Assembly: GCF_023055435.1 (NCBI RefSeq)
Contig: NW_025964354.1
Span: 2,294,001-2,358,000 of the forward strand
Direction of reading: 5' to 3'
DNA length: 64,000 nucleotides
From: Haliotis rufescens
Lineage: Eukaryota
Below the pieces are notes generated by a model. That model worked only from the letters and a program-made list of their open reading frames with translations, was not told where the DNA came from and searched no databases. Positions within the stretch are counted from its first letter, which is position 1; the number at the start of each line of letters is the position of its first letter. The position numbers and the translations under genes are program-made. Positions 211 to 63,429 of the stretch are shown piece after piece.

Positions 211-3200
211 CTGGGGTTACAATGTGACGCTTGTCCATGAGAACTGGTTTATATCAGATTATTGTACTTCCCACTCTTTATATATGCTTGCTTTTGTAGA
301 ATACAAAGTATAATACAAGTAGTGCTATAATAATGGAGTAATACATGTTTTAATCTATGACGCTGCTTGATATATTTCAAGACATAAGGTGCCCCCAAAA
401 GGACAAAACATTTTTCCTGCCCGATCAACAGCACCCACCTCACGAACAATTTGCACAGTGAAGTAAGGGTTTGTTTTTGACCTCACGCCATAGACAGCAA
501 GACTCCTGCCATACGACGGAGGTCTGTGAACAATGGAGTCTGGTCTGAGCTACTTACGTGAGACAATCAGCTTATGTCCACACTGAGGTACACGGCGATA
601 TCCGCTGACACAGAAGTATTTGCCAGCGTCAGCTGCTGTAACATTATGAAGCAACAAACGTGCAATGACAAATTCAGATGAAGGACTAACTCCCTTGATC
701 TGTAGTCGTGAGGTATAGGTATGCCCAACATTCCATTTATCAGATAGCTTCCACATAAAATGTGGACCAGAGGGCGACGTGATGTAGGACCCGCTCTCCA
801 GTGAGGGCATCTTCCACGTCATCATGGCATCCTCTCCTCCAGGCACCACAGTGTAGTTCTTGTTATCATCAGACCAATCTGTAAAATAGATTTTTTTCGT
901 TTAGTATTTACGTATTGTCGTCAGCACATGACACTACTGTCTCTGATCAGACAGGAATTATTGAAAATACTAAGCTCAGATGGAAATCATGATACACACG
1001 TCCCGTTGAACACTTTTAGGTGAAAGCCCCCCTTCCAGCACCTAACTGGTTCACACTCATGTTTATGAGCATGCAACTCACCACCAACAATCAACTCGAC
1101 CAGTGTATATTGACATTGACGGTGATCTTGCGTTGGACGCGTCATTATTAATCCTTTGAGGTATAACTGAAGTAAAAATCATGTCTAATTGACGTGTTTG
1201 TTCAAACCACTCACATATTAGTGCAATATCCACACTCCACTCAGACTGTATCTCCCCCACTCCAGCCTGACACTTGTATCTGTCGTTCTCCCGCCAACTA
1301 TCACGAATGGTCAAGGTGCTGGTGTGGTTTATCTGTCTCCCATCATACACAGAGCTCCACGTCTCAGATGACGCCATGTGATTTCTCTCCCCACTATACA
1401 GCCTGATATTGTTTTCTCTCCATGTGACTGACACAGTTGGGACGCTATCCGGATAGATCCGTAGTCTACAGTTGCATGTCAGGTTCACGGTTCTGTTATG
1501 TTCCCTTTCAAGATGTATGTAGGGGTGATGAAAATCTAAAATGCAAAGCATCAATTCTAGACAATTGACACTGGGAATCAAAAAGCAAACTACACACTAA
1601 TGCTGTCTTCTCTTGATTATAGAATACACTCAATTAAAGACGTACGCGATTCTGATTGGTCTTTCAGAGGTTTGAAACCACAATGACCAACAGTTTTAAG
1701 GAGCTGATTTGACAGCCAGATCCCCGCTGAGTTGATATTTACAGAAACAGGATATACATTGTGCTTACTGCAGTATCCAATTTATGTGTGGCAATACATT
1801 TTGAGCAGAAAACGTGTATTTAGACTTTTCTGGACAACACAGAGCTTGGAATCTGGCCATTTTCTACTTCCCACTTTTACCTTTCCACCAAGATATACTT
1901 TGTCACTACCACATCAAGCTGACACACCGTCATATAACTGGACTACCGTTCAAATAACTAAACACTCTCTATTTATCACAGTGAATGGTGTGACGTAATT
2001 ATAGTCACTTAGAACTAATAGAACCAATACATGAAAGTCTTTCTGATCTATAAGTATAATGATGTAATAGCATCAGTATTGTAGCACATGCATGCTGTTT
2101 TATACAACCCATATAAATCATTGGACTCAACCCACAATACCTCACTCGATATATTCGCTAACACCAAACAGTAGGTGTTTAGTATGGTCATGGAAAATGG
2201 AGATTAACAATCTGATATTTTGATAAGATGTAACTACACCAAGAATAGGGAATTGAAACATTTGCCAAACCTGCGAGATCGGGTCAACATAAACATTTGC
2301 GCGGTTATATCTACAGGCTACCTGGTTCGGGTTCAGACCAATGGTCAATGAATAGGGCACAACTCAGAGACGCATTTCAGCTTAACGAAATATGCCACAC
2401 TGACATTTGTGACAATCTCATCATGGACACAAAACTGCTTGTCGTACTGGCATATGTGGTTCCGCTACAAGAGAAAAATATCTTAAACGTCACAAGCATC
2501 CTCTCCATTCACATAGTTTTGAACAAACATGTGTCTCATTTATTGCGATGGTGTTAGCGGTTGTGAAGGAGAGGGGTACAATAATTAAACAATATTGTGA
2601 AACAAATTCTTACCCATAACTTAAAGTGTCTGTCCACAGTTTGGCATCCTGATTCTTCTATAGGGGAGATATGATCACATAAGACACTCTTCCGCGAGTA
2701 CTCACCTATAACATCATGGCATGTCAGCTTAATGTTGGAGGAGAGTCAGAAGTTACGTTTACCATCTTGTCGAAACCTAGAAGCATGTTTACGGTGTGCC
2801 CGAACCAAGGATCACACACAGAACGAATTTTGGAGTCGAAACATACAGTCATTAAGCTCACATGGACATTCGATAATACATCAGAACCCTGCAGGTACTT
2901 ACCTATAACATAAAGTGTTTGTCCACAGTTTGGCATCCTTGTTCTTCTATACGGCGGACGTGTCGGGTCCAGGTGACAGCTGTACTGGCCAGCGTCAGAG
3001 GGGGTCACGTTATACAGTTGGAAACTGAAGGTTCCACGTGTGTAGGACAATGAGTCGCTATTAATCCTTGTCCTCAGTTCCTCATCAGCAAGTGTTACTT
3101 TATTGCTGCCAGTTATCTGAAACACTATCCTGTATTCCTTCATCACCTTGAACTCCTTGATGGGAGACATGGCCCACGTCACAGTCACAGGTCCTCCAAG

Positions 3201-4515
3201 GCGAGCATAGACGCCTGCAGCAGCTGAACAATACAACACGGATTTCATGAAGTTGTGGAAGTATGAGTGAGTGAGTGAGCATAGTTTTGGCCGCTTTTAG
3301 CAAATATCACGGCGGGGCACACCAGAAACGGGCTTCTCTAATTGTACCCATGTCGGGAACCGAACTCGGGCCTTCGGCGTGACGAACGAACACTTTAACC
3401 ACTAGCCTACCCGACCGCCCCTTTGGAGGTATGGACCAAGAACACAGTTAAACCTTATAATTTCAATATAAAAGGATGTAAGACCACGTCTTTCAAAGTA
3501 TATTTATTTCTTCCACTTTTTTAATCGTAGCATATATGTTATTTTAATGTTTGGCGAAATTATGTCAGTCGTCGCTAACAACTGGAGGGATGATGTAAAT
3601 CCGACTGAAGTCCATGCAGGTAGCAAAAGTACTGTAAGTCCCCATGATCCCCAGCGCGGTGATCGACTTTCAGTTGGTGGCGATCTATAGCCCGTTTTTA
3701 TAATGTGTTGTCGAATGATTAAGTTAGTTATCTATTTTAACATATTCTCAAACTAGTTTTACGAATATCTGTGATATGCTAGTTTTTATACTGCCCTTCG
3801 TCGGCAGAATTTTATACAGCTAAAATTATATTGTTGATGTCAAATTTTGTTTCGTCACGATATGGCTGAAAAATATTGCCGATGTGACGTTAAATCTTAA
3901 TTCACTCACTCACTCAATATAAAAGGCCAATTTTGTATAACTTTTCTGACGAAACATCCAAATACATGTGTCAAGACAATCATTCTTACAACCCTTGTAA
4001 ATCCATGGATTTACCGACTCTTACTGAATGACCTCTGCAGCAGTAACCACCAAGAAAACACCTGTTTCGCGAGATACGCGAGATTGTTTGAACTCACGTG
4101 TTGAGGTTTTATAGTAACAAGTATTTCGATACAAAATGCCAATTCTCTGTCGCTTTTCTAACGAATTGCTTACCCTTTTCGAAAAGGCCTGTTGCCATCA
4201 TAGACATACATCTCAAATACATATATGGCGGAAGCGATGTAAGTAATATTATTTTAAATTTGCTTACTTGTTGCTCCAATGTGGCTGTAATTCAAAAGAC
4301 AATACACGACCCAAGAATAAGGAAAGCAGCTCCACACACGTTGCATTGTGTCAATGCGCTGCCAGACTATTTCACACTGATTTGATGAAAGTTGTTTTTA
4401 GAGTGCAGATCGAGGAAGACGTGTATGTGAACGATAAAAAACACTGTTTCCGTGTACGTTGTTCTTGTTTCATTTACCTCAAGATGATTAACGCTATATT
4501 TGAAATATGAAACAT
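140..4515 (-). CDS. G1: IgSF gene, V*-C-V* plus short terminal exon, probably secreted (~372 aa). Exons: 4478-4515?, 4015-4061?, 2903-3223, 1215-1535, 558-878, 140-210
   Basis: Three 321-bp phase-1/phase-1 Ig exons with canonical AG/GT. The terminal exon after 'ccccag' reads RKLEKPDITDTDSFSLNQINNRQ*. The leader exons are tentative. The full model totals 1119 nt and is in frame. Confidence 0.7.
558..878 (-). CDS. G1 exon: atypical V-type Ig domain 3
   Basis: tttacag|...|gtaagt, 321 bp. WSDDNKNYTVVPGGEDAMMTWKMP...LLLHNVTAADAGKYFCVSGYRRVPQCGHKLIVS (DxGxYxC motif). Confidence 0.9.
1215..1535 (-). CDS. G1 exon: C/I-type Ig domain 2
   Basis: ttttag|...|gtgagt, 321 bp. VNLTCNC...VTWREN...TSTLTIRD...DRYKCQAG shows the canonical C-W-C triad. 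Confidence 0.9.
2609..2714 (-). pseudogene. Two duplicated fragments of the V*1 exon 3' end (G strand + splice donor) in the G1 intron
   Basis: 2609-2666 reads PYRRIRMPNCGQTL*VM|gtaag. 2696-2714 is atgttatag|gtgagtac, matching the G2 V*1 exon end near 17101-17116. Confidence 0.7.
2903..3223 (-). CDS. G1 exon: atypical V-type Ig domain 1
   Basis: ttcag|...|gtaagt, 321 bp. VYARLGGPVTVTWAM...FQLYNVTPSDAGQYSCHLDPTRPPYRRTRMPNCGQTLYVI. Confidence 0.9.
3264..3421 (-). mobile_element. SINE family A
   Basis: Reverse-complement match to 28366-28533. Confidence 0.75.
4015..4515 (-). CDS. G1 tentative two-exon leader (4478-4515 + 4015-4061): MFHISNIALIILRCFLGGYCCRGHSVRV
   Basis: ATG...AG|gtaaat (phase 2), then aaacag|47 bp|gtaaat (phase 1), joining the V exon in frame. 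Hydrophobic core present, but not homologous to the G2-G4 leaders. Confidence 0.35.
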
Positions 4516-6276: not shown

Positions 6277-7170
6277 GAACACGCACACACGTATTTAACA
6301 TGTAAATACGTACTTTCTCCCACACACAAACACGCACACACACGCGCATATACACATGTTCACACACACATACACATACACGCGCACACGCACACGCATA
6401 CACGCACACACGCACACACACATGATCCCATACGCACATACACATACACGCACACTTACATATACACACACACGCACACATACATGGACACGCATACACG
6501 CACACTTATACACACGTACACACGCATACACACACGAACACACATACGCAGACACACGCACGAACACAAACACACACGCACGCAAACATACACACACACG
6601 CATGCACACAAGCACATACAAATACATACACGCACGCTCACATACACACACGCGCACAGTGCGCACACGCACGAACACACATACACAGACACACGCACAC
6701 ATACACGCACACACACATACACACACGCACACACACGTACACACGCATACACAGATGCGCACACCCACACACTCACATACACATACACGCACGCACACAT
6801 ACACGCATACACACACATTCACTAGAGCGATAAATATACACACATACGCACGTACACATACGCGCACACACACATTCACGTACGCACACATACACACGCA
6901 TACACGCACACATACAAACACACACGCANNNNNNNNNNNNNNNNNNNNNNNNNNNNNNNNNNNNNNNNNNNNNNNNNNNNNNNNNNNNNNNNNNNNNNNN
7001 NNNNNNNNNNNNNNNNNNNNNNNNNNNNNNNNNNNNNNNNNNNNNNNNNNNNNNNNNNNNNNNNNNNNNNNNNNNNNNNNNNNNNNNNNNNNNNNNNNNN
7101 NNNNNNNNNNNNNNNNNNNNNNNNNNNNNNNNNNNNNNNNNNNNNNNNNNNNNTATGCACGTACACATAG
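6277..7170. repeat. Degenerate (CA/CG/TA)n microsatellite spanning an assembly gap (N 6929-7153)
   Basis: Seen directly. Confidence 0.95.
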
Positions 7171-9114: not shown

Positions 9115-10048
9115 GCCTAGTTAGGGGATATGTAGGGGTGATGGGTGGCGTCCCTCATCCTTGTGAAGAGTTGTCTTGTTAGGGAATATGTAGGGGTGAT
9201 GGGTGGCGTGCCTCATCCTTGTGAAGAGTTGTCTGGTTAGGGGATATGTAGGGGTGATGGGTGGCGTGCCTCATCCTTGTGACGAGTTGTCTTGTTAGGG
9301 AATATGTAGGGTTGACGGGTGGCGTGCCTCATCCTTGTGACGAGTTGTCTTGTTAGGGAATATGTAGGGTTGACGGGTGGCGTGCCTCATCCTTGTGACG
9401 AGTTGTCTTGTTAGGGATATGTAGGGGTGATGGGTGGCGTGCCTCATCCTTGTGAAGGGTTGTCTAGTTAGGGGATATGTAGGGGTGATGGGTGGCGTGC
9501 CTCATCCTTATGAAGAAGTGTCTAGTGAGGGGATATGTAGGGGTGATGGGTGGCGTGCCTCATCCTTGTGAAGGGTTGTCTTGTTAGGGAATATGTAGGG
9601 TTGACGGGTGGCGTGCCTCATCCTTGTGACGAGTTGTCTTGTTAGGGAATATGTAGGGTTGACGGGTGGCGTGCCTCATCCTTGTGACGAGTTGTCTTGT
9701 TAGGGAATATGAAGGGGTGATGGGTGGCGTGCCTCATCCTTGTGAAGAGTTGTCTAGTTTGGGGATATGTAGAGGTGATAGGGGGCGTGCCTCATCCTTG
9801 TGAAGTGTTGTCTAGTTAGGGGATAGGTAGAGGTAATAGGGGGCTTGCCTAATCCTTGTGAAGGTTTGTCTAGTTAGGGGATATGTAGGGGTGACGAGTG
9901 GCGTGCCTCATTATTGTGAAGGGTTGTCTAGTTAGGGGATATGTAGAGGTGATAGGGGGCGTGCCTCATCCTTGTGAAGGGTTGTCTAGTTAGAGGATAT
10001 GTAGGGGTGATGGGTGGCGAGCCTCATCCTTGTGACGAGTTGTCTTGG
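9115..10048. repeat. 58-bp G-rich minisatellite, ~16 copies, just 3' of G2
   Basis: Unit ttaggggatatgtaggggtgatgggtggcgtgcctcatccttgtgaagagttgtctag. Confidence 0.95.
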
Positions 10049-10271: not shown

Positions 10272-10941
10272 TTATAACACAGTTATGTCATCGCATTGAC
10301 CTGGCATGATCAAGCATTCCGTTTCATCAACTGTGTTTCCATTTTCATTGAGGGAAAGCTGCATAATGTGTTCTTTACTGTCCAGTTGTGTCGCCATAAT
10401 ATCACTGTTCTCTGATGATACTGTCCCCACCAACTCCTGGTATGCCTCAATAGTATCTCTTTTGATACCACTATCAGTATTGCGTTGTCTCTCTTCTCTT
10501 TGTTGGATAATGGACATTGTTTCAGCAATGATATTGTCCAAGTTAGATATGATTCTCAACACTGTGTCGGGATGAGAATCTATAGGAGAGCTTACTGACT
10601 GAGCTTCAGTTGAACTGATACCACCATGTACTGTCATACCTTGTTCCCCAAATGACACATTTCCATCCACTTCAGGGATTTCGTTTCGCATTTGTCTCCT
10701 CTTCTCTCCAATCCCAGATTCTGAAGTAGTTTCTGGGTCAGTACAGTCCAAATTCCCTAGGTCTGGTGCCTTGGTTGCTTGATGTTTCAAACTCTGGGAT
10801 GTCGATCTGACCGCTTGATCTACCTTCTGTCCTGCAGCTGACCCCGCTTGTGGCATATTGGCCTCAACAAACTCAGCATAGGTTATGCTTTGGAATGACA
10901 TACCTATATTGTCAGAGGGCGTGATAGGCGACTTGCAAAAC
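10272..10941 (-). CDS. G2 cytoplasmic-tail exon (~223 aa, acidic/Ser-Thr rich)
   Basis: ccacag|G TTT TGC, continuing into ORF 10272..10901. Confidence 0.8.
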
Positions 10942-13900
10942 CTGTGGATACAATGTCTTCTGTCATTTCCTATATGGCCAACATATTTAAATTTAAATTA
11001 TTCCACAGCTATTGACACTTTACAATAACGTAGCTTCTTCTTATTGACTCTATCCTCTATAATTGTTTTGTCATACCTTTTGGTATCTGTTATAATGCGA
11101 AATCTGATATGTTCCGTCACTGTTGAGAGGGGTGCTCATTTATAACCCTTAGTCCCACACTAATCCGCTAATTCTGGATTTTATCTACAACATAGTAAAC
11201 TTCTGTGACATGCATCACACTAAGGTATTTCTCCCACATGAAATGGAAATGCCCCATAAAACTGAACTACCGTTCGATGTGTTATAACTCAACTCATTCA
11301 CGCACTCACGTCACCAAGTTTTCAATGACAGTTTCAAGTTATTAATTAAAAAAACACACAAACCTGATCGTAAGATTGAAACCTTGTATCCTTCACACTA
11401 TAATGCCAAACATACTGTGTCAGGATGCTACATTATGCACAGATTGTCATAGTTTGTAAGGATATGTCTTTATGAGACTGTAATTCCTTGCTCTCTTGAA
11501 GACGGGGTGCACAAATGGCTAAAACACTTGCTCGTCACGGTCGAAGACCCGGGTTCGAGTCACCATATGGTAACAATGTGTCCCCCAAAGTGACGTTGCT
11601 AGAATATTGTTAAAAGCATCGAAAACGTGACCCACTCCTTTCAAAAGATGATATGTATACTGTATGTCAGATCCTACCTTCGATTCCAGCGTTCTGCAAT
11701 AAAACACCAAAAATATGTTTTCATTCAATTTATCTTTTGAAACATATATTATTGCGTCGATCGTCTACGTGGTCTACTGGGTAGAACGTCTGCCCAGAGA
11801 GCGGAAGTTTGGTGGTTCGATCTCGGCCGCGTCATACCAAACAACGTTTAACGATGGTACTTGCTGTTAACCTGTCTGGCCCTCGACATTTATGGTATAA
11901 AACATGAAATGGTTGACACTATACACATATCTACATTTATCTGTCTGAGGTGCCTTTTTCAGAAGCCATTAATAATAGAAATAAACCGAAATAATTACGA
12001 ATTTCATTATATCGCAGATTAACTATTAATATTTGGAAATCTTACCTCTGATATTCTTGTTTCGGACGAGTACCACGGCAGCAATGACGAGCAAGGTGAT
12101 AGCCAATATTAAACAGCCAATGGCAATGCCAGGAGAGGTCGTATCTGGAACATGTACAATGTATTGTATAATAATAACCAACATAATACAGAGTCGGGTA
12201 AGGGTAAGGGTAAGGGTAAGGGTAAGGGTCGGTCTGAGGGCAAGTTATTAAATGCATGAAAATAAATCAGTGACATTAAATAACATTGTTAGTGAAAAGT
12301 GGAACAATTTCATCATGGGAAATTGTGGTATTATTCCAATGTTTGAGCCTTTTACAAAATGAATATTGCTGATGTATAGAAAAATATTATTTAAAAACAA
12401 TAATAGTTTATTGCGTAAAATAATTAATTTGGCGCTAAACGCTGATGGACAGGATGACATTTGTGCGAACTGTAATTTCCTAAAAGTAGCTTCTTATAGA
12501 ATGAACAATGGCTTTTAGGTGAACGACCAAGGAAATTCGTCACGATTCTAAAGCATCAGTTATTGTCAATGAGAGCTCATTATGAATTGGTTATACAAGT
12601 GTTTGTCATATTCGACTCAAGGCTACAAATCACATTTAAAATAAACTCACGCGTATTCGTGTTGCTTCCTGCAAAGTGAGGAAGGAGATTTCGTGAAAAA
12701 GATAAAAGAAAAGCATTTCAAAGTCATCATCTAAGCAATGTAAACACCCCTGTATGGCACTAGTTATCATTATCTTACAATATATATCTTTACTAAAGGT
12801 TTTTGAAAACTGCCTACATCTTATGGGTGAGTGGGTACCGCTTTTAGCAATATTCCAGCAATATCACGTTGGGGGACACCGGAAATAGGCTTCACACATT
12901 GTACCCATGTCGGGAATTGAACCCGGGTCTTCGGCGTGACGTGCGAACTCTTTAACCACTAGGCTACCCGACAGCCCCTTACATCTAATGTGACATTAGA
13001 AGTACCCAAATTTAAAATTCGAATCTATAATTTCAATAATCGGCTACTTTGAGTTACACGTGATTGGCATACACATGAGTCATAGGTGTTTGGATAAATA
13101 TGACGCCATCCATTATGCAACAGCGCTGATACATTTCCATTTGACATAACACGCCGCTGGATTTCCTGAATGATATCCATGGCCATTTGAAACCCTTTGA
13201 ATTTGAAAGTCTCCTAACTATTAGATATATGATGTCTATCAAAATAATAAGTAAGTCAATCAGAATGAATATATTCATATATTTAGGACAGTATACATAC
13301 GTAGTTGAACATCCAGGACAAAGTCGCTGCTCCATCGCGACACCTGTCCACCCTCCTCTGTACCCTGGCATGAGTAGTTCCCACTATCCTCCTCTCTGAC
13401 ATCAGTGATTGTCAAGGTGGAGCCTGACATTTGGCACCTGGCTCCACACAGTAAGCTGGTGGTGTTTCTTCTCCAGATGTAGGCCATGTTGAGACTGTGG
13501 TCAGGTGGAAGACTCCGGGACGTGGAGGAACACGTCAAGGTTATGTTCTCACCCACACTAGGCAGGTCGGCGGCAGTGATATTCGTCTTCCCTGGCTTGC
13601 CTGGAATACATGGTAATATGTGTACATCAACATGACAATCTTCAACGTTTGTGTTTAGGCATAAATATATCTCGATTTTTCTTCTCTGACATTAAGTGAT
13701 ATTCAAGGTGGAGCCTAACGTTTGGCACCTTACTTAACTGTTCTAAGATGTAGGACATGGTCCGATCGTGATCGTGGCGAAAAAAAAACGGGACGTGGAG
13801 GAACGTTGCATGTCAGCCTTGAATCCCGAGTCAAATTGAACTCTTCTATGTTTCACGGTGTCAAAGGGAACTATCAGCTTATCATACACCTCACACTCGA

Positions 13901-47206: not shown

Positions 47207-50200
47207 TCACACCATCCGGCGCACATTGTCCTGCTCCAGCGCTGTCTGGTTGCCATGGTAGCTCATCTTCTTCTCCACGACACACGTCCGTGTTACTTCC
47301 TCCGTCGTCTTCATGCCGTGACCTCTTGCACTGAATACAGAAAGAACGCCTTCAACAGAAATAAGCAGTGATGTACAGACTGGCATTCTGGTGCCAGATA
47401 GACAAACAAGGGAAACAGTAAAACATACTGTTCGTGTTACAATTNNNNNNNNNNNNNNNNNNNNNNNNNNNNNNNNNNNNNNNNNNNNNNNNNNNNNNNN
47501 NNNNNNNNNNNNNNNNNNNNNNNNNNNNNNNNNNNNNNNNNNNNNNNNNNNNNNNNNNNNNNNNNNNNNNNNNNNNNNNNNNTTTATAGTGCTAGCTCAC
47601 TGAGATACCATGCCGCATTTCAACATGAATACACCACTGAGACACAGTATACGGACTCCGAGCCGACCAGTCCTTGTTTTAGCCCCTTAATGCTGAGCGC
47701 CAGACAGGGTAACAACAAATACCATCTTTTAACGTCTTTTGGTATGACGCGACCGGGGATCGAACCCCGGACCTTCCTCTCTCCGGGCGGATGCTCTACC
47801 ACTGGACCACGGAAGAGGTCTTTCAGTGTAAGAGTTACAGGTACTTATTCCGAATAGATGATCTCCAAAGAATACACGCGATCAAATTTGGTCTTACCGT
47901 TTGTTAACAAATACAATATGAGAACCGCTACCAGGATTCCTATAAGAACGGCATATCCATCTGTAAAATAAAAAAAATATCATTAACTTTACATATATAA
48001 TTAACTGGTCGTTGAGAAGAGTTCCAGTCGAGTGTTCACCACATGTTTGGCAGGCAGAACGTTTTCATGAGGCCTTATAACCATGGCCTAAACATGTGCA
48101 CTATAATATTGATATCGATATACCATTGCCAGTAGTTATGATTCTGGATATAAAATCCGACAATGCCATATCCATACTCATAAGAAATCATTCGATTGCA
48201 ACTATATCATAAGCATTTTTTTTTATATGATCAGCGTGTCAGATAGTGATGGTTGCAGGTATTCGCGAAAAGGTAAGCGCTGGTAGCACCGTCGTGAACA
48301 CATGCAAAGGAAAGTCAGTTTGGCTTTGCTTGTAACTGATGATGCTCGCCTGTCTGCCATACCAGTTGTAGAAAAGTTCACTTAGGTCTTAAATCACTTC
48401 ATATAACCAAGTACATACTAAGCACTACACAGTGTATATTACACGTTGAAAAACGTATACTGCCCGAGTATACACTGTATACCGAGTAACTATAGACCTG
48501 TTTGCACTGTTACTCCTGTATCTGTACTACATATGACATTGTACACTACACACAAGTCGAGTATGTAGACTTACATGAACTTGTGGATTCTACACGGGCC
48601 ATGCATGGCACAGTCTACACGATACACAATTTACACTAAATACAGGTGACAGTATAAACTGTGTGCCGAACGATGAATTGCAACTTTTTTCACTCTACAC
48701 CATTCTTATATACTTACACTTATTCGGCGATGTCATAACTGGCTTTGTTGCTGTGGCGTTATGACCTGAAATGTATTGAATGTTATATACTAAACTACAC
48801 TATGCATCAATATATTACACTCCTTATTTTTATACATTACAAAAACAAAACTCACAAAACACCTATTACTTGTATATAACTATTACATTCAGAATGCATG
48901 CATTCAACAACTCGCAAAAGACAAAAAAAAGTACGTACCTTAACAAAATACAGCCTATCTGCTATTTATATCAATTTTTTCTAAGAGAATACATTCTTAT
49001 ATTCAATATTTTGACATACTTACAGTGACACTATATAGTCACTGCCTAATGAAGAAGCCTACATTATTTTCTATTAACATGAACTGTCTTTGCTGAGGGT
49101 GATAACTTTATGTTTACACAAACCTGAAACAATATAATATCAAGTTTATGTCCCGAGGGCTAACTGAAAATTATTTCACTTGGGACACATTACATCACTT
49201 GGGAGTGCATTTATAGTCCATTTATTACCACATACGGGTATATACTTTGAAGAGGAATCTGCATACGATAGGGTTTCTTCCATATTATGGCTTTTCACTG
49301 CCTAATTTGCTTTTTACGTCCTATAGTATCTGTTTCGTCGAAAACTCGACATTTGTTATTTTTTTGTGTTAACTTTTCATCTTTAAATTTGTGAACTGAA
49401 TTACCTCTCAGAGTGATTAACGAAATACTCACTCACTCATTTTTAATTTGACAGTTAAGTAGCACAGCTGACGCAATACACATAACACCGGATTACAATT
49501 GTGAACGTATGAGATACGTACTTGAGACAAATAGGTCGTGTATACACCGAGTCAGGGAGATCTTGGTTGCACCTTTTTCCTCTCTCCTGCAGGTGTACCT
49601 TCCAGCATCAGCTAGTGAAACATTGTAGAGACAAAAGACATAGGTGCTGGTGTTACGGGAGGTAACAACCTCCACCATCCTGGTTCTGAGCCAGTACTTA
49701 GGAAGTATGTAGACCTTATTGGCATCCACAGCCATAAACTTATCCCCACTAGGTGTCATGATGTAGAATTCATATCGATAACGAGGCATCTTCCAGGCTA
49801 CCATGGCATGATCACCTTCACGCACTTGTGTGTAGTTCGGGACTTTTTCCATCTTTGCTGTAAAACATCACAATTACACATACATAATTTAACAGTGTGC
49901 ATGTATGAGTGAAAGCGTACTGGCATGAGCGCGGGTCCTTGTTTTCATGTTTTTTTGTGAAAGCGTAATGTGCTGAATCCGTTGCAATATAAGTTATATT
50001 GGGAGACAATAAATACACATTTCAATTTTGTCATTACTATGGATTTGTACAGACCGCTTCAAAACATATAACTACTCAAATGCGCCTAGAACACTCAATT
50101 ATTTTCATTCTTTACTTCCTGAGGAGCATATAACCTAACCATTAACAGTCACATTGCCATCTCCTCCAACTTGTTAGGGTGCTGTGTGAACAGGAGTACA

Positions 50201-53200
50201 CTAGACTCTCACGAGTCAACCTGCTGAGCACCTGATCTCCAATCATTGTTTGTATATTTCTAAATGTATGTTTTTCAAATAAAGATATTCTGAGGTAGAT
50301 AGTGTTCTAATGTAAAGAAATGGCATTCATCTAAAACACGGCAGTTGTATGACATTCGACTGGATATCACATCTATGCATTGTTGTTGATATAATCTGAG
50401 AGTTATACTGTGGATTCTGCCCTCAATCACATATTTGCAATTAAGTACATTGCTCATAAATGAATTTTACACAACAACTAACGTCTCATTATACAAGTTG
50501 CCAGCCTGCCTTTGATGTTGTAGTGTTTTAATCACTTACAGTTTGTAGACAATTCAGATTCTTCACTCCATTCAGACTGAACATCCCATCCCACCAGTTC
50601 AGCTTTACACGTGTATCTGCCTCTGGTACCATCACTGACGGTCAGAGAACCCTTGTGGTAGTAATAGTCTCCATGTAACTTAGAAACTGCCAAAGGAAGT
50701 CTTTCTATGTTTGCCACTTCGACTTCATTCCGCCTCCAACCCCAAGTAATTGATGTCTGTAAATACCCTTTCACGGCGACGTAACATGTCAGCGTGACAA
50801 TTTTATCGGCTTCAACTGTCTGAGGGGCGACGATGTAGGGATCCGCAATATCTGTTCATAAATATAATGTATGGCAATTGGTAGAGGTACAATGCAAGAA
50901 TCGTTACAGGGACCTAAACTCATATTTGAGTAAAACTACATAAACTCATCATGTATTATAAATGAAAATATACACATGTCACAGAACATTTTTCCAACAA
51001 GTAATAAGACAAAAGCGCTTGCAAAATGTATGTTCGATTGAGTATGAGGACGAGTATCCCTCTCGTGGCATGGTATTTGATATATTCTGGAAAAGGTACA
51101 TTTTGATGATTTTGTGAGTGAATATCAAAAGGAGATGGCCAGTAGTTTTGATTTGAGAGAACTTGTTTCAACTACATTTGTCTCATTTATCTGTTATTTG
51201 TGCTTGGTTGATTGTACTCATATTATTAAATCATACTCACATTTTACAAATAGCCGTTGACCACAGTCGTACACTCTTGACCCGGGCGAGCCTGGTGACC
51301 CTCTGTGACATCTGTACTCTGCACTGTCTGGCCAGTCCACATTATACAGCTCGAAGCTGAACACCCCAGATCCTGAAGAATTCACTCTCCCGGTGAATGC
51401 AGCTCTGGACTTGTATCTGTCAGTGACATTCACTTGATTGTAGTCAGTTATGTGGAACAGAGATTTCGAAGATAACCGTCGCACTGTAAATTCTCCGAGT
51501 CCAGGTCGGGGTAATTTCCACGACAGAAAGGCAGTACTCCCGAGGCGGGCGTGTGCAGGCACCGCAGCTGAAATAATACAATGCATGGTAAAACACACCC
51601 GAAGAAAACCAGGAAGCAGTAGTTCTGCCTGCGTTGTGTAGCAGATACAACTGAATGTCACGGTGCCAGTCATCACTGATCAGTTGGCCGCTCATTGAAA
51701 TGTGATTATAAAGATGTGTCCAATAGATACTAAGGTCAATTCATAAGTTGCTGTAGACTGTCACTGTAGTCTAAGCACGGATCGAGTCGAAACTACAATA
51801 GTTTGGATGTGCATTTGTTCACAAGGATGGGTCGTAGCGAGGATATTCGTGAACAATCATGCAATAAAACTCTCTGACATTTCTCAATGTATGCGTCAAT
51901 CCTGAGTTCAAGATTAGGGGGCTTAATGATCAGAATATATCAATAAAGCGGCAAAACGTTTTCCATATCCAAAACAATGCCTGTATAAAGCAGAGTCTAC
52001 GATTCCGATTATATCACGAGCTTGTGTTTATGAATCACTTTCAAGTAGTAATGATACCAGATCGTCGCGACCGGCGGCACCCTCACAAACACATGCAAAG
52101 GAAAGTCAGTTGTTCGCCTAAAACAAAACGGAAACATATGGTACAAGTCAAAATAGGGAATTGTATCGGACATACATTTTGTCAATGGTGGGTCAAATTT
52201 GGAAAAGTCCTCCACATATCTACCAAAAAACTTTTTGAAAGCTTTACTGAGGCCTTGAATGCTGTAATCTTGATCAAACAACTTCTGAGCAAGAGTCGCA
52301 TGACGCTCTTTGAAATCGTGGCACAAAGAACATGCTTTGTTGTATCTCAAATGTTGTGAAATGTAATCGCCAAATGCTGGAGCTGCTGGAATATTACTCG
52401 ACATTGAAGGGAAGTTGACTATTGGGAAGTGGAAGTCATCCCTCTTGTCATACAGTGTTGTGGAGAGTGTATTGTCACCCTGAATCTTTATGCAGAGATC
52501 TAAATATGGAACGGATGAGGTGGTCTCACTGGTCTCCTCTATTTCTTGTTCAAGTGGGTAAATCAGTGGAAGGGAATGGGCTATTTGACTGACATTGTGT
52601 ATTCGTGCTATCCCCCAGGAATGTGAAAAAAAGTCCGTCAGTGTTTACGTCATTTCAAGAAAACAGTCTCGAGAAACACGTATGAACGTCAGTTTCGCGG
52701 TCATGTGACCGACCTCTCGCCCAATGGAAATGCCGTATATCTTTTAAACTTCACATTACAAATCATACAGCTTTAAACTGTCATTTAGTAAAATAGAAAA
52801 ACGGTACCCATGACTTTTGAATTTCTTTTAAATGGATGGTTGTAACTGAAATCAATTTGTTTACACAGTCCATCATATTAGTTAATGTACATTTCATTTA
52901 TTTTCAAATCAATCAGATAGCATATCTGTTTGCGCTGAATGAACACACGATTTGCCGTGCTGTGTGTAGTCGCGATGGCACATCTAAGTATTTTGTCATT
53001 TCAAAGTGAGGCATGTTGTTTCCTCGTAAAAAATATATGTTTTGATAAAAGTTAGATTCGATTTCCCCAATACTTCAGCGCTCGCTATATTTAGTTCATA
53101 GGAATGTTATGGTATGCATCGTGAAGTGATGCGGCGGTGTGTTTACATTCTGTCATTATAGGCATGCATATTACGGGCATATTGCGAACTTACATTGAAC

Positions 53201-54685: not shown

Positions 54686-55633
54686 AGAGTTATCACCATG
54701 GGGCAGGAGTTATCACCATGGAGCAGGAGTTATCATCTTGGGGCAGGAGTTATCACCATGGGGCAGGAGTGATCACCATGGGGCAGGAGTTCTCATCATA
54801 GGGCAGGAGTTATCACCATGGAGCAGGAGTTATCATCTTGGGGCAGGAGTTATCACCATGGGGCAGGAGTGATCACCATGGGGCAGGAGTTCTCATCATA
54901 GGGCAGGAGTGATCACCATGGGGCAGGAGTTCTCATCAAAGGGCAGGAGTGATCACCATGGAGCAGGAGTTCTCATCATAGGGCAGGAGTTATCATCTTG
55001 GGGCAGGAGTTATCACCATGGGACAGGAGTTATCACCTTGGGGCTGTCGTTATCACCATGGGGTAGCAGTTATCGCCATGGGGCAGGAGTGATCACCATG
55101 GGGCTGTAGTTATCACCATGGGGCTGTAGTTATCACCATGGGGCTGTATTTATCACCATGGGGCTGTAGTTATCACCATGGGGCAGACGTTATCACCATG
55201 GGGCAGGAGTTATCACCATGGGGCTCTAGTTATCACCATGGGGCTCTAGTTATCACCATGGGGCGGGGGTTATCACCTTGGGGCAGAAGTTATCACCATG
55301 GGGCTGTAGTTATCACCATGGGGCAGGAGTTATCACCATGGGGCAGGAGTTATCACCATGGGCCAAGAGTTATCACCATGGGGCAGGAGTTCTGACCATA
55401 GGGCAGGAGTTATCATCTTTGTGCAGGAGTTATCACCATGGGGCAGGAGTTATCACCTTTGGGCAGGAGTTATCACCATGGGGCTGTAGTTATCATCATA
55501 GGGCAGGAGTTATCACCTTGGGGCAGGAGTTATCACCATCGGGCAGGAGTTATCACCTTGGGAGCAGGAGTTATCACCATGGGACAGGAATTATCACCAT
55601 TGAGCGGGGGTTATCACCATGGGGAAGGTGTTA
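54686..55633. repeat. 20-bp satellite array (~47 copies), paralogous to 40403-45228
   Basis: Same unit and same flanks. Confidence 0.97.
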
Positions 55634-56460
55634 TGTATGACTCAGTCTACTCCACTTTCCATCCGGTTTCACATGTGATCTCGCACTTCCCCGTGTTCAG
55701 TTACTGTTACTATAAAACTATATGTTTCAACGGTGTGTGTATAATGTAGGTTGGCGGTGTGTGTGTTTCTGTCTTGCGAGGACGACCTCTGCTGTAGGTC
55801 ACATGCCACTCAGACAAGCAATCAGTTTTTTTCTGAGAATCCGTTGGACGCTAGCTAACCGCAGCTACGTTCACACTGTTAAATTTGCTAATTTTCAGGA
55901 TGACATGAAACAGGACATGTTTTAATGTCATAAAACACTTGAATGGGTTACGCAGATCATATTCGAGCTGGGGTCAATGCTCGAAAATACGTTAATCATA
56001 TCAATGAATATAAGGCTTCTTTGTACGTGACTTCGAGTGACTCAATTTAACGGCGTATCATCTTGTTGTGGAAGGAAATCACGAGGCGATGCAGGTCTCA
56101 CACTTTCCTCACTGTGGTGAAACCAACGAGCACGGATGTGGTGCAAACCTTAACAAATATTCATGGAGAACCAAGATTTGTACACAGAATGACAGCATTC
56201 TGCCAAGGCTAAGGGACACAACTCTGCATAGGACATTTTGGCGTCTTGGACGAAAGGGCCACCCTGCCCCTGCTGCATAATGAACACGAGAAATTGTTTC
56301 GAAGCCATAATTTATTTTAAACTAATTACACAGCTGTAATGTGAAAAGAAAATTAAAAAAAGTTCGTGGAATGCATAACAAAAGCGTTTTCGTTTGGGAT
56401 ATGTACATCAGGTCACTGATATGATCTTTATAAGAGATTCATACTTCTATGGTGAAATCC

Positions 56461-57401
56461 AAGCCATGGTTACACCTTATCGACAACGTTCTGTTGTTGT
56501 TCGGCATCTCTGTATGGGGACAACTCCCATACTACACAATAACATAAGCCATGGTTAGACCTTATCGACAACGTTCTGTCGTTGTTTGGCATCTCTGTAT
56601 GGGGGACAACTCCCATACTACACAATAACATAAGCCATGGTTACACCTTATCGACAACGTTCTGTCGTTGTTTGGCATCTCGGTATGGGGACAACTCCCA
56701 TACTACACAATAACATAAGCCATGGTTACACCTTATCGACAACGTTCTGTCGTTGTTTGGCATCTCTGTATGGGGACAACTCCCATACTACACAATAACA
56801 TAAGCCATGGTTACACCTTATCGACAACGTTCTGTCGTTGTTTGGCATCTCTGTATGGGGACAACTCCCATACTACACAATAACATAAGCCATGGTTACA
56901 CCTTATCGACAACGTTCTGTTGTTGTGTGGCATCTCTGTATGGGGACAACTCCCATACTACACAATAACATAAGCCATGGTTACACCTTATCGACAACGT
57001 TCTGTCGTTGTTTGGCATCTCTGTATGGGGACAACTCCCATACTACACAATAACATAAGCCATGGTTACACCTTATCGACAACGTTCTGTTGTTGTGTGG
57101 CATCTCTGTATGGGGTACCACTCCCACACTACATAATAACATAAGCCATGGTTACACCTTATCGACAACGTTCTGTTGTTGTTCGGCATCTCTGTATGGG
57201 GGACCACTCCCACACTACATAATAACATAAGCCATGCTTACACCTTATCGACAACGTTCTGTTGTTGCTCGGCATCTCTGTACGGGGTACCACTCCCATA
57301 CTACACAATAACATAAGCCATGGTTACACCTTATCGACAACGTTCTGTTGTTGGTCGGCATCTCTGTTTGTGGGACCACTCCCACACTACATAATAACAT
57401 A
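56461..57401. repeat. ~85-bp tandem repeat, ~11 copies
   Basis: Same unit as 46562-46991. Confidence 0.92.
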
Positions 57402-57965: not shown

Positions 57966-58747
57966 ACATAAGCCATGGTTACACCTTATCGACAGCGTTC
58001 TGTTGTTGTTCGGCATCTCTGTATGGGGGACCACTCCCACACTACATACATAACATAAGCCATGGTTACACCTTATCGACAACATTCTGTTGTTGTTCGG
58101 CATCTCTGTATGGGGCACCACTCAAATGCAACATACATAACATAAGCCATGGTTACACCTAATCGACAACGTTCTGTTGTTGTTCGGCATCTCTGTATGG
58201 GGCACCACTCCCATACTACATAATAACATAAGCCATGGTTACACCTTATCGACAAGGTTCTGTCGTTGTTTGGCATCTCTGTATGGGGGACAACTCCCAT
58301 ACTACATAATAACATAAGCCATGGTTCGACCTTATCGACAACGTTCTGTTGTTGTTCGGCCACTCTGTATGGGGTACCACTCCCATACTACATAATAACA
58401 TAAGCCATGGTTACACCTTATCGACAACGTTCTGTTGTTGTTCGGCATCTCTGTATGGGGCACCACTCCCATACTACATAATAACATAAGCCATGGTTAC
58501 ACCTTATCGACAAGGTTATGTCATTGTTTGGCATCTCTGTATGGGGGACAACTCCCATACTACATAATAACATAAGCCATGGTTGCACCTTATCGACAAC
58601 ATTCTGTTGTTGTTCGGCACCTCTGTATGGGTACCACTCCCATACTACATAATAACATAAGCCATGGTTACACCTTATCGACAACGTTCTGTTGTTGTTT
58701 GGCATCTCTGTATGGGGGACCACTCCCATACTACATACAAAACATAT
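57966..58747. repeat. ~86-90-bp tandem repeat, ~9 copies, 3' of G5
   Basis: Same unit. Confidence 0.92.
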
Positions 58748-58816
58748 AGGAACCATAACCTCAATACTATCAATTACTGAGACATACTATTGACCACCTT
58801 TTGCTTGGCCAACTCA

Positions 58817-59105: not shown

Positions 59106-62100
59106 CTTCAACAGAAATGAGCAGTGATGTACAGACTGGTATTCTGGTACCAGATAGACAAACAAGGGAAACAGTAAAACATATTGTTCGTGTTACAATT
59201 TCAAATACAAAATATTTCAGCATAGGTGAGGTGAAATTGGGTTTACCGTCGCGTCCAAGATTTTTCACATATATGGCGACGTTCATGCACGTGTTTGTGT
59301 GGCTTCTTGTACTAGTCCGGACTGATACCTATTTATAGTGCTAGCTCACTGAGATACCATGCCGCATTTCAACCTGAATACTACCCGACTCAGACACAGT
59401 TTACTGACTCCGAACCAACCAGTCCTTGTTTTAGCCCCTTAATGCCGAGCGCCAGACAGGGTAACAACAAATGCCATCATTTAACGTCTTTTGGTATGAC
59501 GCTGCCGGGGATCAAACCCCGGACCTTCCGCTCTCCGGACGGCTGCTCTACCACTGGACCACGGAAACGGTCTTTCAGTGTAGGAGTTACAGGTACTTAT
59601 TCCGAATAGATGATCTCCAAAGAATACATGCGATCAAAGTGTGGTCTTACCGTTTGATAACAAATACAATGAGAACCGCTACCAGGATTCCTATAAGAGC
59701 GGCATATCCATCTGTGATATAAAAATATCATTTACTTTACATATACAATTAACTGGTCGTTGAGAAAATTCCAGTCGAGTGTTCACCACATGTTTGGCAG
59801 GGAGAACGTTTTCATGAGGCATTATAACCATGGCCTAAGCATATGCACTATAATATTGATATCAATATACCATTGCCAGTAGGTATGATTCTGGATAAAA
59901 AAGCGACAATGCCATTTCCATAATCATAAGAAATCATTCGAGTCCAATATACGATTGCGACTATATCATAAGCAAATGTTTATATAATCAGCATGTCAAA
60001 TAGTGATGGTAGCAGATATTCGCGAAAAGGTAAGCGATGGTAGCACCGTCATAAACACATGCAAAGGAAGTCAGTTTGGCTTTGCTTGTCAATGATGAGA
60101 CATATTTTGAAAAGTCCTCCACCTGTCTGCCATACCAATTGTAGAAAAGTTCACTTAGGTCTTGAATCACTTCATATAACCAAGTACATACTTAGCACTA
60201 CGTATACTACCCGAAAAACGTATACTACCCGAGTATACACTGTATACAGAGTGACTATAAACTGCTCCTGTTTGCACTGTTTCTCCTGTTTCTGCACTAC
60301 ATATGACTATACACAAAGTCGAGTCTGTACTTACACAAACTAGGGGATGTCACATGGGCCTTTGAGTGTGGTTCTTGTGATGTCATTGATAGATACGTAG
60401 CTGAAAATGAATAGTACAGTCAACACAATACATGATTTACACAAAACACAGGTCACAGTATAAACTATTTGCCGAACGATGAATTGCAACCCCACTCTAC
60501 ACCAGTCACTTATATACTTACACTTACTCGGCGATGTCATAACTGGCTTTGTTGCAGTGGCGTCATGACCTGAAATGTATTGAATGCTATATACTAAGCT
60601 ACACTATGCATCAATATATTACACTTCATATTTGTATACATTACAAAAACAAAACTCACAAAACACATATTACTAGTATATAACTATAACATTCAGAATG
60701 CATGCATTCAACAACTTGCATAAGACAAAAAAGTATGTACCTTAACAAAATACATCTTCTATTTATATCAACTTTTTCTAAGGGAATACATTCTTATGTT
60801 AAATATTTTGACATACTTCCATTGACACTATTGTGGTCACTGCCTAATGAAGAAGCCTACGTTATTTTCTATTTACATGATTTGTCTTTGCTGAGGGTGA
60901 TAACTTTATGTTTACACAAACCTGAAACAATTTAATATCAAGTTTATGTGCCAAGGGCTAATTGAAAATTATTTCACTAGGGACACAAATGTCATATCAA
61001 ATCGAAGTGAGTGCATTAATAGTCCATTTATTACCACATATATACTTTGAAGAGGAATCTGCATACGATAGGGTTTTCCTTCCATATTATGGCTTTTCAC
61101 TGCCTAAGTTGCCTCTTACGTCCTACAGTATCTGTTTCGTCGAAAACTCGAAACTTGTTATTTTCTTGCATTAACTTTTCATCTTTATATTTGTGAACTG
61201 AATTACCTCTCAGAGTGATTAACGAAATACTCACTCACTCATTTTTATTTTGACAGTTAAGTAGCACAGCTGACGCAATACACATAACACCGGATTACAA
61301 CTGTGAACGTAAGAGACACGTACGTGAGACAAACAGGTCGTGTATACACCGAGTCATGGAAATCTTGGTTGCACCTTTTTCCTCTCTCCTGCAGGTGTAC
61401 CTTCCAGCATCAGCTAGTGTAACATTGTAGAGACGAAAGACATAGGTGCTGGTGTTACGGGAGGTAACAACCTCCACCATCCTGGTTCTGAGCCAGTACT
61501 CAGGAAGTATGTAGACCTTATTGGAATCCACTGCCATAAACTTATCCCCACTAGGTGTCATGATGTAGAATTCATATCGATAACGAGGCATCTTCCAGGC
61601 TACCATGGCATGATCACCTTCACGCACTTGTGTGTAGTTCGGGACTTTTTCCATCTTTGCTGTAAAACATCACAATTACACATACATAAGTTAACAGTGT
61701 GCATGTATGAGTGAAAGCGTACTGACATGAGCGCGGGTCTGTGTTTCATGTTCATGTGAAAGCGTAATGTGCATAGTGCTGAATCAGTTGCAATATTAGT
61801 GATATTGGGAGGCAATAAATACACATTTCAATTTTGTCATTACTATGGATGTGTACAGAGCTCTTTAAAAAATATAGAATACTTGATTATTATCGTTCTT
61901 TACTTCCTGGGGTGTATATAACCCAACCATTAACAGTCACACTACCATCTCCTCCAACTGGTTAGGGTGCTGTATGAACAGGATCACACTAGACTCCCAG
62001 GAGTCAACCTGCCGGACACCTGATTTGTATATTAATAAAACAAATTCAAATAAAGATAGTGTAATGTAAATGTTGTGTAAAGAAATGACATTCGTCTGTA

Positions 62101-63429
62101 ACAGGGGGCTAAGATAGAAAGTCTCATCAAGTTAACACATGACTAGCTAGATACTGGCATGACTGTATGGATCATAAGTTGTAACAGAAGACATTTGTAT
62201 GACCTTCGTCTGGAGATTACATCTATGTCTTGTTGTTATTACAATCTTATACTACTAGGTAAACTGTGGATTCTGCCCTCTGCCCCTAGAAGCATTTGTA
62301 ATTAGGATGAATGAGTTGGTCATATGAACATGCATATTATACAACTTGACTACCTGCCTTTGATGTTGTAGTGGTTTAGTCACTTACAGTCTGTGGACAT
62401 TGTAAATTCTTCACTCCAGTCAGTTTGAACATTCCATCTCACTAGTTCAGCTTTACACGTGTATCTCCCTCTGTCATCATCCTGTCCTACATCACTGACT
62501 ATCAGAGCGCTCTTAAGGTAGAAGTAGTCTCCATGTAACTTCGAAACTGCCAAAGGATGTATTCCTATGTTTACATGTTCGACTTCATTCCGCCTCCAAC
62601 TCCAAGTTACTAATGTATGTATGTACCCTTTCACGGCGACGTAACATGTCAGCGTGACATTTTTATCGGCTTCAACTGTCTGAGGGGCGACGATGTAGGC
62701 AACCGCAATATCTGTTCATAAATATAATGTATGGCTATTGGTAAAGGTACAATGCAAGGGTCGTTACAGGGACCTTAACTCATATTTGAGGACAACTATA
62801 TAGCATACTCATCATTTCTAAATGAAAATATACACATGTCACAGAACATTTTTCAAACAAGTAATAAGACAAATGCGCTGGCAAATTGTATGTTCGATTG
62901 AGCATCAGGACATGAGAATACCTCTCGTGGCATGGTATTTGATAGATTATGGAAAAGGTATATTTTGATAATTTTTTGAGTGAATATCAAAAGCAGATGG
63001 CCAGTAGTTTTGATTTCAGAGAGCTTGTTTCAGCAACATTTGTCTCATTTATCTGTTATTTGTGCTTGGTTGATTGTACTCATGTTATTAAATAATACGC
63101 ACATATTACAAATAGCCATTGACCACAGTCGTACACTCTTGACCCGGTAGAGCGTGGTGACCCTCTGTGACATCTGTACTCTTCATTGTCTGGCCAGTCC
63201 ACATTATACAGCTGGAAGCTGAACACCCCAGATCCTGAGGAATTCATTCTCCCGGTGAATGTTGCTCTGGACTTGTATCTGTCAGTGACATTCACTTGAT
63301 TATAGTCAGTTATGTGGAACAGAGATTTCGAAGATATCCGTCGCACTGTAAACTCTCTGAGTCCAGGTCGGGGTAATGTCCACGACAGAAAGGCTGTACT
63401 CCCGAGGCGAGCATATGCAGGCGACGCAG
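58817..63429 (-). CDS. G5: IgSF receptor, 5'-partial (leader beyond window), V*-C-V*-stalk-TM-tail. Exons: 63103-63429, 62388-62711, 61324-61659, 60528-60569, 59651-59711, 58817-59105
   Basis: GT-AG with consistent phases. TM GYAALIGILVAVLIVFVIKR joins in phase 2 to RSFCIQCKRSR...EEHIYGTV...HTSSIL*. Confidence 0.82.
59300..59572 (-). mobile_element. tRNA-derived SINE family B (also 47583-47820 -, 13912-14152 +, 11760-11920 +)
   Basis: tRNA-like head followed by cataccaaaagacgttaaa...ggcgctcggcattaagggg...atctcagtgagctagcactataaa, shared among copies. Confidence 0.7.
59651..59711 (-). CDS. G5 transmembrane exon
   Basis: atcacag|61 bp|gtaaga. Hydrophobic run ending KR. Confidence 0.85.
61324..61659 (-). 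CDS. G5 exon: atypical V-type Ig domain 3
   Basis: 336 bp. Confidence 0.9.
62388..62711 (-). CDS. G5 exon: C-type Ig domain 2
   Basis: 324 bp. NVTLTCYV...TWSWRRN...DRGRYTCKAE. Confidence 0.9.
63103..63429 (-). CDS. G5 exon: atypical V-type Ig domain 1
   Basis: 327 bp. Paralogue of G3/G4 domain 1. Confidence 0.9.

Follow-up and report, generated by a model that had tools for sequence, protein, structure and literature searches.

Five tandem receptor genes in a red abalone contig

The stretch of DNA analysed here, hereafter the window, comprises 64,000 nucleotides (nt) of the red abalone (Haliotis rufescens) genome (NW_025964354.1, positions 2,294,001–2,358,000), and contains five tandem genes, G1 to G5, whose products carry variant V-like immunoglobulin (Ig) domains. 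The canonical Ig core is built around a 'pin', consisting of a Cys on strand B, a Trp on strand C and a Cys on strand F, which is the textbook signature of these domains. An initial annotation of the window had drawn attention to the variant domains through a series of short motifs, all of which we located on the minus strand, within ten stop-free stretches of the window. All ten variant exons lie on this strand, each with an AG acceptor, a GT donor and phase 1-1 boundaries, as is classic for exons of Ig domains, and each specifying one domain of ~106–111 residues:

63104–63427, minus strand: G1 D1, variant V-like exon of the AFLSW class, with the Trp, the F-strand Cys (F-Cys) and the G-strand Cys (G-Cys); matches protein P0002, residues 133–241
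61325–61657, minus strand: G1 D3, variant V-like exon of the AMVAW class; modelled by AlphaFold2
51242–51565, minus strand: G2 D1, variant V-like exon; 100% identity to P0001, residues 1–115
49523–49855, minus strand: G2 D3, variant V-like exon; evidence from the alignment of the ten, splice sites and mapping of database proteins
37375–37698, minus strand: G3 D1, variant V-like exon; evidence from the alignment of the ten and splice sites
35611–35943, minus strand: G3 D3, variant V-like exon; 100% identity to P0013, residues 1–111
17109–17426, minus strand: G4 D1, variant V-like exon of the VTVTW class; modelled by AlphaFold2, junction to D2 present in spliced contigs
14649–14966, minus strand: G4 D3, variant V-like exon of the AMMTW class; junctions present in spliced contigs
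2904–3221, minus strand: G5 D1, variant V-like exon; evidence from the alignment of the ten, splice sites and mapping of database proteins
559–876, minus strand: G5 D3, variant V-like exon; 100% identity to P0158, residues 242–349

Self-comparison of all minus-strand open stretches, together with mapping of database proteins, places the ten variant domains as the first (D1) and third (D3) domains of the five genes. G1–G5 follow one plan, in which a signal peptide is followed by the variant D1, a canonical Ig domain (D2) with the Cys-Trp-Cys arrangement, the variant D3, a transmembrane helix and a cytoplasmic tail; in G4 and close relatives such as P0005, a further canonical domain (D4) is inserted between D3 and the transmembrane helix. 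The products are type I single-pass membrane receptors. G4 corresponds to LOC124150189 (protein P0004, XP_046378087.2) and G5 to LOC124150150. Further exons of these genes are:

62383–62709, minus strand: G1 D2, canonical Ig domain with an intact Cys-Trp-Cys pin, between two variant domains
50535–50849, minus strand: G2 D2, homologous D2 exon
36659–36991, minus strand: G3 D2, homologous D2 exon
15813–16145, minus strand: G4 D2, homologous D2 exon
1216–1566, minus strand: G5 D2, homologous D2 exon
13278–13599, minus strand: G4 D4, canonical Ig domain (Pfam ig, 41.4 bits)
10275–10967, minus strand: last exon of G4, encoding the transmembrane helix and a Tyr-containing cytoplasmic tail
20990–21061, minus strand: signal-peptide exon of G4

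Spliced contigs, RefSeq models and substitution rates together show that the genes are real. Contigs from four public runs, presumed to be RNA and recording splicing rather than expression level or tissue, skip the introns of G4 exactly at the predicted D1>D2, D2>D3 and D3>D4 junctions, with GT..AG on the minus strand; those flanking D3 are 15812>14968 and 14648>13599. No run registered as RNA covers this stretch. RefSeq models match genes of the family under the names uncharacterized protein, hemolin-like or titin-like. Pairwise ratios of non-synonymous to synonymous substitution rates (dN/dS) among the window paralogues are 0.41–0.60, indicating constrained but fast evolution. Neither of the assembly gaps overlaps or adjoins any V-like exon: 6929–7153 is intergenic, between the last exon of G4 and the first exon of G5 (4266–4346), and 47445–47582 falls within a G2 intron, between the transmembrane exon (47848–47958) and the tail exon (47064–47351).

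A third occurrence of the motif NCGQTL (2624–2641) was considered as an eleventh domain and rejected, being a fragment with a stop directly after the motif. This relic (2609–2667, minus strand) lies in an intron ~240 bp downstream of the G5 D1 exon, and shows 88% identity over 61 nt to the 3′ end of that exon, with the stop right after CGQTL. A separate departure from the common plan is found in G3 D2 (36659–36991), which has Ser in place of the B-strand Cys (LTSY, versus LTCY in G1) and is left with a lone F-strand Cys; this may reflect a decaying copy, or a loss that is tolerated.

Elsewhere in the family, some relatives combine the variant domain with CUB domains. Family cytoplasmic tails (P0003, P0070, P0005, P0013, P0037) carry the recurring tyrosine motifs G-Y-A-E-I-D-D and D-Y-E-E-V, and some tails contain long arrays of a ~32-residue repeat that includes P-Y-Y-L-T-A-T, or of a ~17-residue acidic repeat; these motifs and repeats may be signalling or docking modules.

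A B-strand tryptophan and two conserved cysteines replace the Ig pin

Alignment of the ten domains reveals invariant columns at G9, W16, R50, S59, L69, N71, V72, D76, Y80, C82, C99, L103 and V105. W16 lies within the second strand; the conserved A'B Gly precedes it by 7 residues and the F-strand Cys follows it by ~66, a spacing which assigns it to the position of Cys23 and not to that of Trp41. When unrelated canonical Ig domains were aligned to the family profile, their B-strand Cys fell into the Trp column in 13 cases, so the Trp stands in strand B and not in strand C. The predicted C strand has no Trp in any of the ten. The initial annotation had described precisely this replacement, along with an F-strand Cys followed by a second Cys 9–16 residues later, and both features are borne out in all ten domains, with 9, 14 or 16 residues intervening between F-Cys and G-Cys. 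The ten share 27–40% identity between classes (blastp); since they are paralogues, their agreement counts as one inherited feature rather than as ten independent events.

To place this pattern in a wider sample, we took a census of the genome by six-frame profile search, which returned 251 candidates. At least 150 variant exons are present, in clusters spread over five contigs; of the 150 top matches, 147 are open and three contain stops. Across 68 diverse genome-wide exons with 18–40% identity, F-Cys and G-Cys are the sole invariant columns. Among 140 unique genomic exons, 111 have Trp, Cys and Cys at the B, F and G sites, and eight have Leu, Phe, Met or Cys at the B site with both Cys present; both Cys are thus at their standard sites in 119, and in 13 more the second Cys is shifted by two residues. 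Three exons are truncated. Trp occupies the B site in 85% of the 140 exons and Met, Leu or Phe in ~15%, with Cys in one. The conserved two-Cys pattern of this wider family, together with the predicted fold described below, supports the proposal of the initial annotation that these domains form a distinct V-set subtype.

The 13 exons with a shifted Cys constitute a D3 subfamily (L126, L130, L133–L144; contig C90, 26.6–27.0 Mb), in which the B site is Met, the G-Cys site is Trp and the second Cys stands two residues upstream. This arrangement looks like a compensatory swap, suggesting contact between the B and G sites.

Other features of the V-set core are largely retained. Scoring the eight hallmark residues listed in PMC9546547 by residue identity, we found that six are kept: Gly16 (86%), Arg75 (96%), Leu89 (77%), Asp98 (98%), Tyr102 (95%) and Cys104 (99%). 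In the family alignment, columns G9, R50, L69, D76 and Y80 correspond to Gly16, Arg75, Leu89, Asp98 and Tyr102. The two lost are Cys23 and Trp41. At two inward positions of the predicted C strand (D1 residues 23–28), Phe (73%) and Val (72%) are found and no Trp. G-Cys itself lies in a hydrophobic-Pro-(Asn/Asp)-Cys-Gly motif; family-wide, between 4 and 16 residues separate F-Cys from G-Cys, while G-Cys always stands at one fixed distance from the L-x-V core motif.

Several individual copies differ in their Cys content. In G2 D3 (49523–49855), a strand E residue that is Arg in G1 and G3 is Cys, which brings the total to three. In the next gene beyond the high end of the window, a D3 paralogue ~92% identical to G1 D3 (L004:1501–1833; G000:C576:2358961–2359293) has Cys rather than Trp at the B-strand site and hence three Cys, on B, F and G; it could serve as a natural 'revertant', informative on which Cys pair forms. 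A large D1 subfamily (L033, L045, L048, L080–L109; contigs C90 3.3–6.0 Mb, C157 and C268; proteins P0016, P0075, P0003 and P0007) carries a further pair of Cys, placed on predicted strands C and C', and its variant domain alternates with CUB where a protein model exists.

The variant domains are predicted to adopt a V-set fold

We obtained AlphaFold2 models of G4 D1 and G1 D3 from a 68-row alignment. The G4 D1 model has a predicted local distance difference test score (pLDDT) of 86.9 and a predicted template modelling score (pTM) of 0.80, and the G1 D3 model a pLDDT of 92.0 and a pTM of 0.83. DSSP assigned nine strands to each, in the order A, B, C, C', C'', D, E, F, G; the Trp falls on B, and the two Cys on F and G. 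Structural searches with Foldseek and VIA-align returned only V-set domains as top matches to both models, with Z of ~10–11.5 over 88–107 aligned residues. The best match of G1 D3 is Necl-4 Ig1 (Z 11.5, root-mean-square deviation (rmsd) 2.4 Å, 92 residues), followed by Necl-2, SynCAM2, Dpr, CD80 and VH/VL; G4 D1 matches VH and the CD80 IgV domain (Z 10.4), NTB-A (Z 10.1), neurotrimin, CD4 D1 and PD-L1. VHH domains are also among the V-set matches, and the neighbours in the ESM Atlas are V-set clusters. The models thus support a V-set assignment by predicted fold, in agreement with the initial annotation. Two outcomes that would have spoken against that annotation, a Trp aligned to strand C and a fold outside the V-set, were not observed.

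Profile searches behave differently. No variant domain reaches a Pfam gathering cut-off, and the sub-threshold matches cover the E-F region alone: the best 'ig' score is 20.3 bits against a cut-off of 21.8, and V-set (PF07686) gives 13.3–18.7 bits or no match against a gathering score of 26.

Probable pairing of the F-strand and G-strand cysteines

The pattern of conservation suggests that F-Cys and G-Cys probably form a disulfide within the domain. Conservation of both is extreme, and the number of Cys per domain is exactly two in most cases (113 of 151); both are also kept in planorbid snails, where the B site is Phe, Ile or Leu. In copies with C-x4-C spacing, the two Cys would face each other across a tight turn, which favours a bond between strands F and G. 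Furthermore, in one lineage F-Cys has changed to Val and G-Cys was then also lost in a relative.

Several observations weigh against such a bond. In gap-free alignments to lambda and T-cell receptor (TCR) alpha J segments, G-Cys corresponds to the X of F-G-X-G and the following Gly to the second Gly; these alignments used a 39-residue hairpin query with non-significant matches and serve for positional mapping alone. End-anchored structural alignments to VH are consistent with G-Cys at the X of F/W-G-X-G. In canonical V domains, the side chain of this X points to the outer G-F-C-C' face; in antibodies it is solvent-exposed at the V-V interface, and it is the site of engineered interchain disulfides in disulfide-stabilised Fv fragments (dsFv). 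A bond from an outward-facing G-Cys to the inward-facing F-Cys therefore needs a non-canonical local geometry. In both models, strand G starts, by DSSP, three residues earlier than a simple hairpin with opposed Cys allows, which suggests, without being decisive, an irregular bulge at G-Cys in the predicted structures. The hydrophobic-Pro-(Asn/Asp)-Cys-Gly motif looks like a kink, from which G-Cys could fold back onto F-Cys. Three of the 140 unique exons have F-Cys alone, with Trp or Ser on strand G, and two have G-Cys alone; single-Cys variants in both directions mean that neither Cys strictly needs the other. Finally, the Cys count of the G4 ectodomain is odd, with three in D2.

Mutual information with average product correction over 170 family domains (61 effective sequences) was uninformative on the register of strands F and G: no anti-diagonal is prominent, and the top pairs reflect only the split between the D1 and D3 subfamilies. 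PDB sequence searches returned no solved domain with the same F-G Cys pair, the profile matches being generic ones to the E-F strands.

The same observations bear on the strongest alternative, namely that the domain has a V-set fold in which the two Cys are not bonded to each other. F-Cys would then be a buried free thiol packed against the B-strand Trp, and G-Cys would be exposed on the G-F-C-C' face, either linked by a disulfide to another chain or domain (as a covalent dimer, or between D1 and D3) or acting as a redox-sensitive thiol. The alignment of G-Cys with the exposed X of F-G-X-G, the variants that retain one of the two Cys and the odd ectodomain Cys number of the G4 class fit this arrangement, as does the replacement of a lost G-Cys by Trp, the type of residue found at the interface position of the J motif. 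However, 99% conservation is unexpected for a buried free Cys across paralogues of 18–40% identity and planorbids, and F-Cys stays while its supposed partner site on strand B drifts among Trp, Phe, Leu, Met and Ile. The C-x4-C and C-x5-C variants set both Cys side by side, and the presence of exactly two Cys in most domains also speaks for a pair. On balance we consider unbonded cysteines unlikely, while giving them real weight.

Far less probable is a reading in which the domain is truncated or misread and its Trp is in fact the usual Trp of strand C, or in which the fold is I-set/C2-like or another β-sandwich instead of V-set. Pfam scores that all stay below the gathering cut-offs and are limited to the E-F region are compatible with this, but the Trp sits in the second strand at the spacings given above, with C, C' and C'' following before D, canonical domains put their B-strand Cys in its column, and the top structural matches are V-set throughout. 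Least credible, and in our view very unlikely, is that the pattern is a structurally meaningless by-product of a decaying pseudogene array: damage is seen in some copies (stops in three of the best genomic matches, G3 D2 without its B-strand Cys and a relic exon fragment at 2609–2667), but 147 of the 150 matches are open, dN/dS is 0.41–0.60, all ten exons have canonical splice sites, spliced transcripts are present and the signature is common to abalone and planorbid snails.

Variability maps to the G-F-C-C' face

The initial annotation had proposed that the disulfide staples a ligand-binding loop resembling complementarity-determining region 3 (CDR3). Our data do not support this part of the proposal. 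In the D1 class, the FG loop has 14 residues in most copies, with a conserved Gly-Ser-Pro...Gly motif and low entropy, so that it is CDR3-like only in position. The variability lies on strands F, G and C/C': the highest entropies are found at the outward-facing F residues 79 and 81 (3.4 bits), at G residue 102 (3.3 bits), at the start of C' (31–32) and in the BC loop. This distribution suggests that the G-F-C-C' face is the surface that has diversified, a situation known from many V-set domains of adhesion molecules and co-receptors.

Taxonomic range

Among the proteins whose source was looked up, full-length profile matches come almost entirely from Haliotis (rufescens, cracherodii, rubra and asinina). 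Beyond abalone, Bulinus truncatus KAH9525185.1 has eight tandem domains, each with the F-G Cys pair and with Phe, Ile or Leu at the B site, and its relatives in Biomphalaria glabrata and B. pfeifferi likewise conserve both Cys, with Phe, Ile or Leu at the B site. Word-based homologue searches reach close relatives alone, returning eight Haliotis proteins and four planorbid proteins. Occurrence in both Haliotis and planorbids means that the subtype is common to vetigastropods and heterobranchs. A literature search, limited in reach, turned up neither an account of the abalone family nor one of a V-set domain with an F-G disulfide, and the variant is apparently an old, undescribed form of the V-type Ig domain.

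A broader view, which we put forward tentatively and would not call probable, is that these domains represent a distinct, unnamed gastropod V-type class (at least Vetigastropoda and Heterobranchia, probably >400 million years old), in which the core disulfide has moved from B-F to F-G and a Trp or Phe plugs the vacated site. In abalone, the class would have grown to hundreds of receptor genes in tandem, diversified on the G-F-C-C' face and bearing tails with tyrosine motifs. Such a repertoire would be a candidate for a role in immunity, allorecognition or gamete recognition, missed systematically by surveys of the Ig superfamily (IgSF) that require a Cys loop of ≥40 residues.

Outside molluscs, P0107 (Siniperca chuatsi butyrophilin-like protein 2) has three near-identical V domains, the first with Trp at the B-strand Cys position and the others with Cys, and all three with a Cys early in strand G. 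It is an independent vertebrate example of replacement of the B-strand Cys by Trp.

Comparison with known Ig systems

Like canonical V-set domains (Necl/nectin Ig1, CD80, PD-L1, VH/VL), the abalone domains have a predicted nine-strand sandwich encoded by a single phase 1-1 exon, and they keep Gly16, the Arg75–Asp98 salt-bridge pair, Leu89, Tyr102 and Cys104. Unlike them, they replace Cys23 by Trp (Phe, Ile or Leu in planorbids) and Trp41 by Phe, Val or Leu, have an extra conserved Cys at the X of F-G-X-G, and score below the PF07686 cut-off.

The N-terminal V domains of CD2/SLAM receptors, which occupy a membrane-distal position, offer a precedent for a V-set domain without a B-F disulfide in multi-Ig receptors with tyrosine-motif tails. 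NTB-A/SLAMF6 (PDB 2if7) is among the best matches to G4 D1, with an rmsd of 3.4 Å over 94 residues. The CD2/SLAM N-terminal domains are not known to have a replacement disulfide, whereas the abalone domains have two conserved Cys flanking the FG hairpin.

In PDB sequence-profile searches, the best matches are V domains of the pIgR/CD300 type, over the C''-to-F region (pIgR E ~1e-19, summed over five domains). Domains of the pIgR type have an extra Cys pair on C and C', and one abalone subfamily resembles them in this respect; unlike the abalone variants, pIgR domains retain the canonical B-F disulfide.

The closest parallel for the B-strand substitution is domain 1 of the Hydractinia Alr proteins, in which Cys23 is replaced by Trp, Phe or Tyr (Huene et al. 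2022, PMC9546547). As in the abalone family, the V-set fold of Alr domain 1 is missed by hidden Markov model (HMM) searches, a bulky aromatic residue takes the place of the B-strand Cys, strand C is without its Trp, and the domain belongs to a large tandem family of membrane receptors. The likeness put forward by the initial annotation therefore holds for the B strand but stops short of strand F: Alr domain 1 has neither the F-strand Cys104 nor the F-G Cys pair (PMC9546547), whereas the abalone domains keep Cys104 in 99% of copies. The resemblance is most simply explained by convergence.

Gastropod FREP proteins provide a comparison closer in taxonomy. The IgSF1 and IgSF2 domains of Biomphalaria FREPs are also V-like, belong to expanded gene families and have a suspected immune role. 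Their definition requires a Cys loop of >40 residues, and they occur joined to fibrinogen domains (PMC7588048). The abalone domains differ in their Cys spacing of 4–16 residues and in their Ig/transmembrane or Ig/CUB architectures, and none of the family proteins read contains a fibrinogen domain. In a survey of the Biomphalaria IgSF, domains were admitted only if their Cys loop spanned ≥40 residues (PMC7588048), a criterion that the short Cys spacing of the variant domains would fail, so that they would be excluded.

Repeats elsewhere in the window

A 20-bp minisatellite is found at 40404–45228 (241 copies) and 54687–55634 (47 copies), and accounts for a GC-rich, skewed stretch with overlapping plus-strand open reading frames. 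Within G4, the intronic stretches 13920–14351 and 16656–16799 have contig depths in the thousands in all four runs, with many internal joints, and are probably a highly repeated, transcribed element. Other satellites are:

46558–46990, 56461–57401 and 57966–58746: satellite, 85–86 bp
9120–10047: satellite, 58 bp
18665–19685: satellite, 35 bp

Discussion

Taken together, we consider it reasonably likely that the five tandem abalone receptors carry a non-canonical V-set subtype with a rebuilt pin, a staple between strands F and G, and recognition through the G-F-C-C' face. In this scheme, a bulky hydrophobic residue, Trp in abalone and Phe, Ile or Leu in planorbid snails, would fill the site of the B-strand Cys; Phe, Val or Leu takes the place of the C-strand Trp, and the F-strand Cys is retained. 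A new Cys, placed at the predicted start of strand G in the Pro-(Asn/Asp)-Cys-Gly kink, would bond with F-Cys within the domain, stapling the base of the FG hairpin and so compensating for the lost B-F bridge. Ligand recognition would be mediated mainly by the diversified G-F-C-C' face rather than by the FG loop.

If the F-G disulfide forms, it would link two adjacent strands where the FG hairpin sets out and would be under strain; bonds of this kind are sometimes redox-regulated. The family is also a natural experiment on how far the core of a V domain tolerates loss of its disulfide, complementing Hydractinia Alr, in which both Cys are lost. Many Ig searches depend on the Cys-Trp-Cys pin, and a large family of V folds without it would mean that the IgSF repertoire of molluscs has been under-counted. 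In the red abalone, an aquaculture species, this repertoire includes a multigene family of receptors whose domain exons number more than 150, and the same domain type occurs in snails that are vectors of schistosomes.

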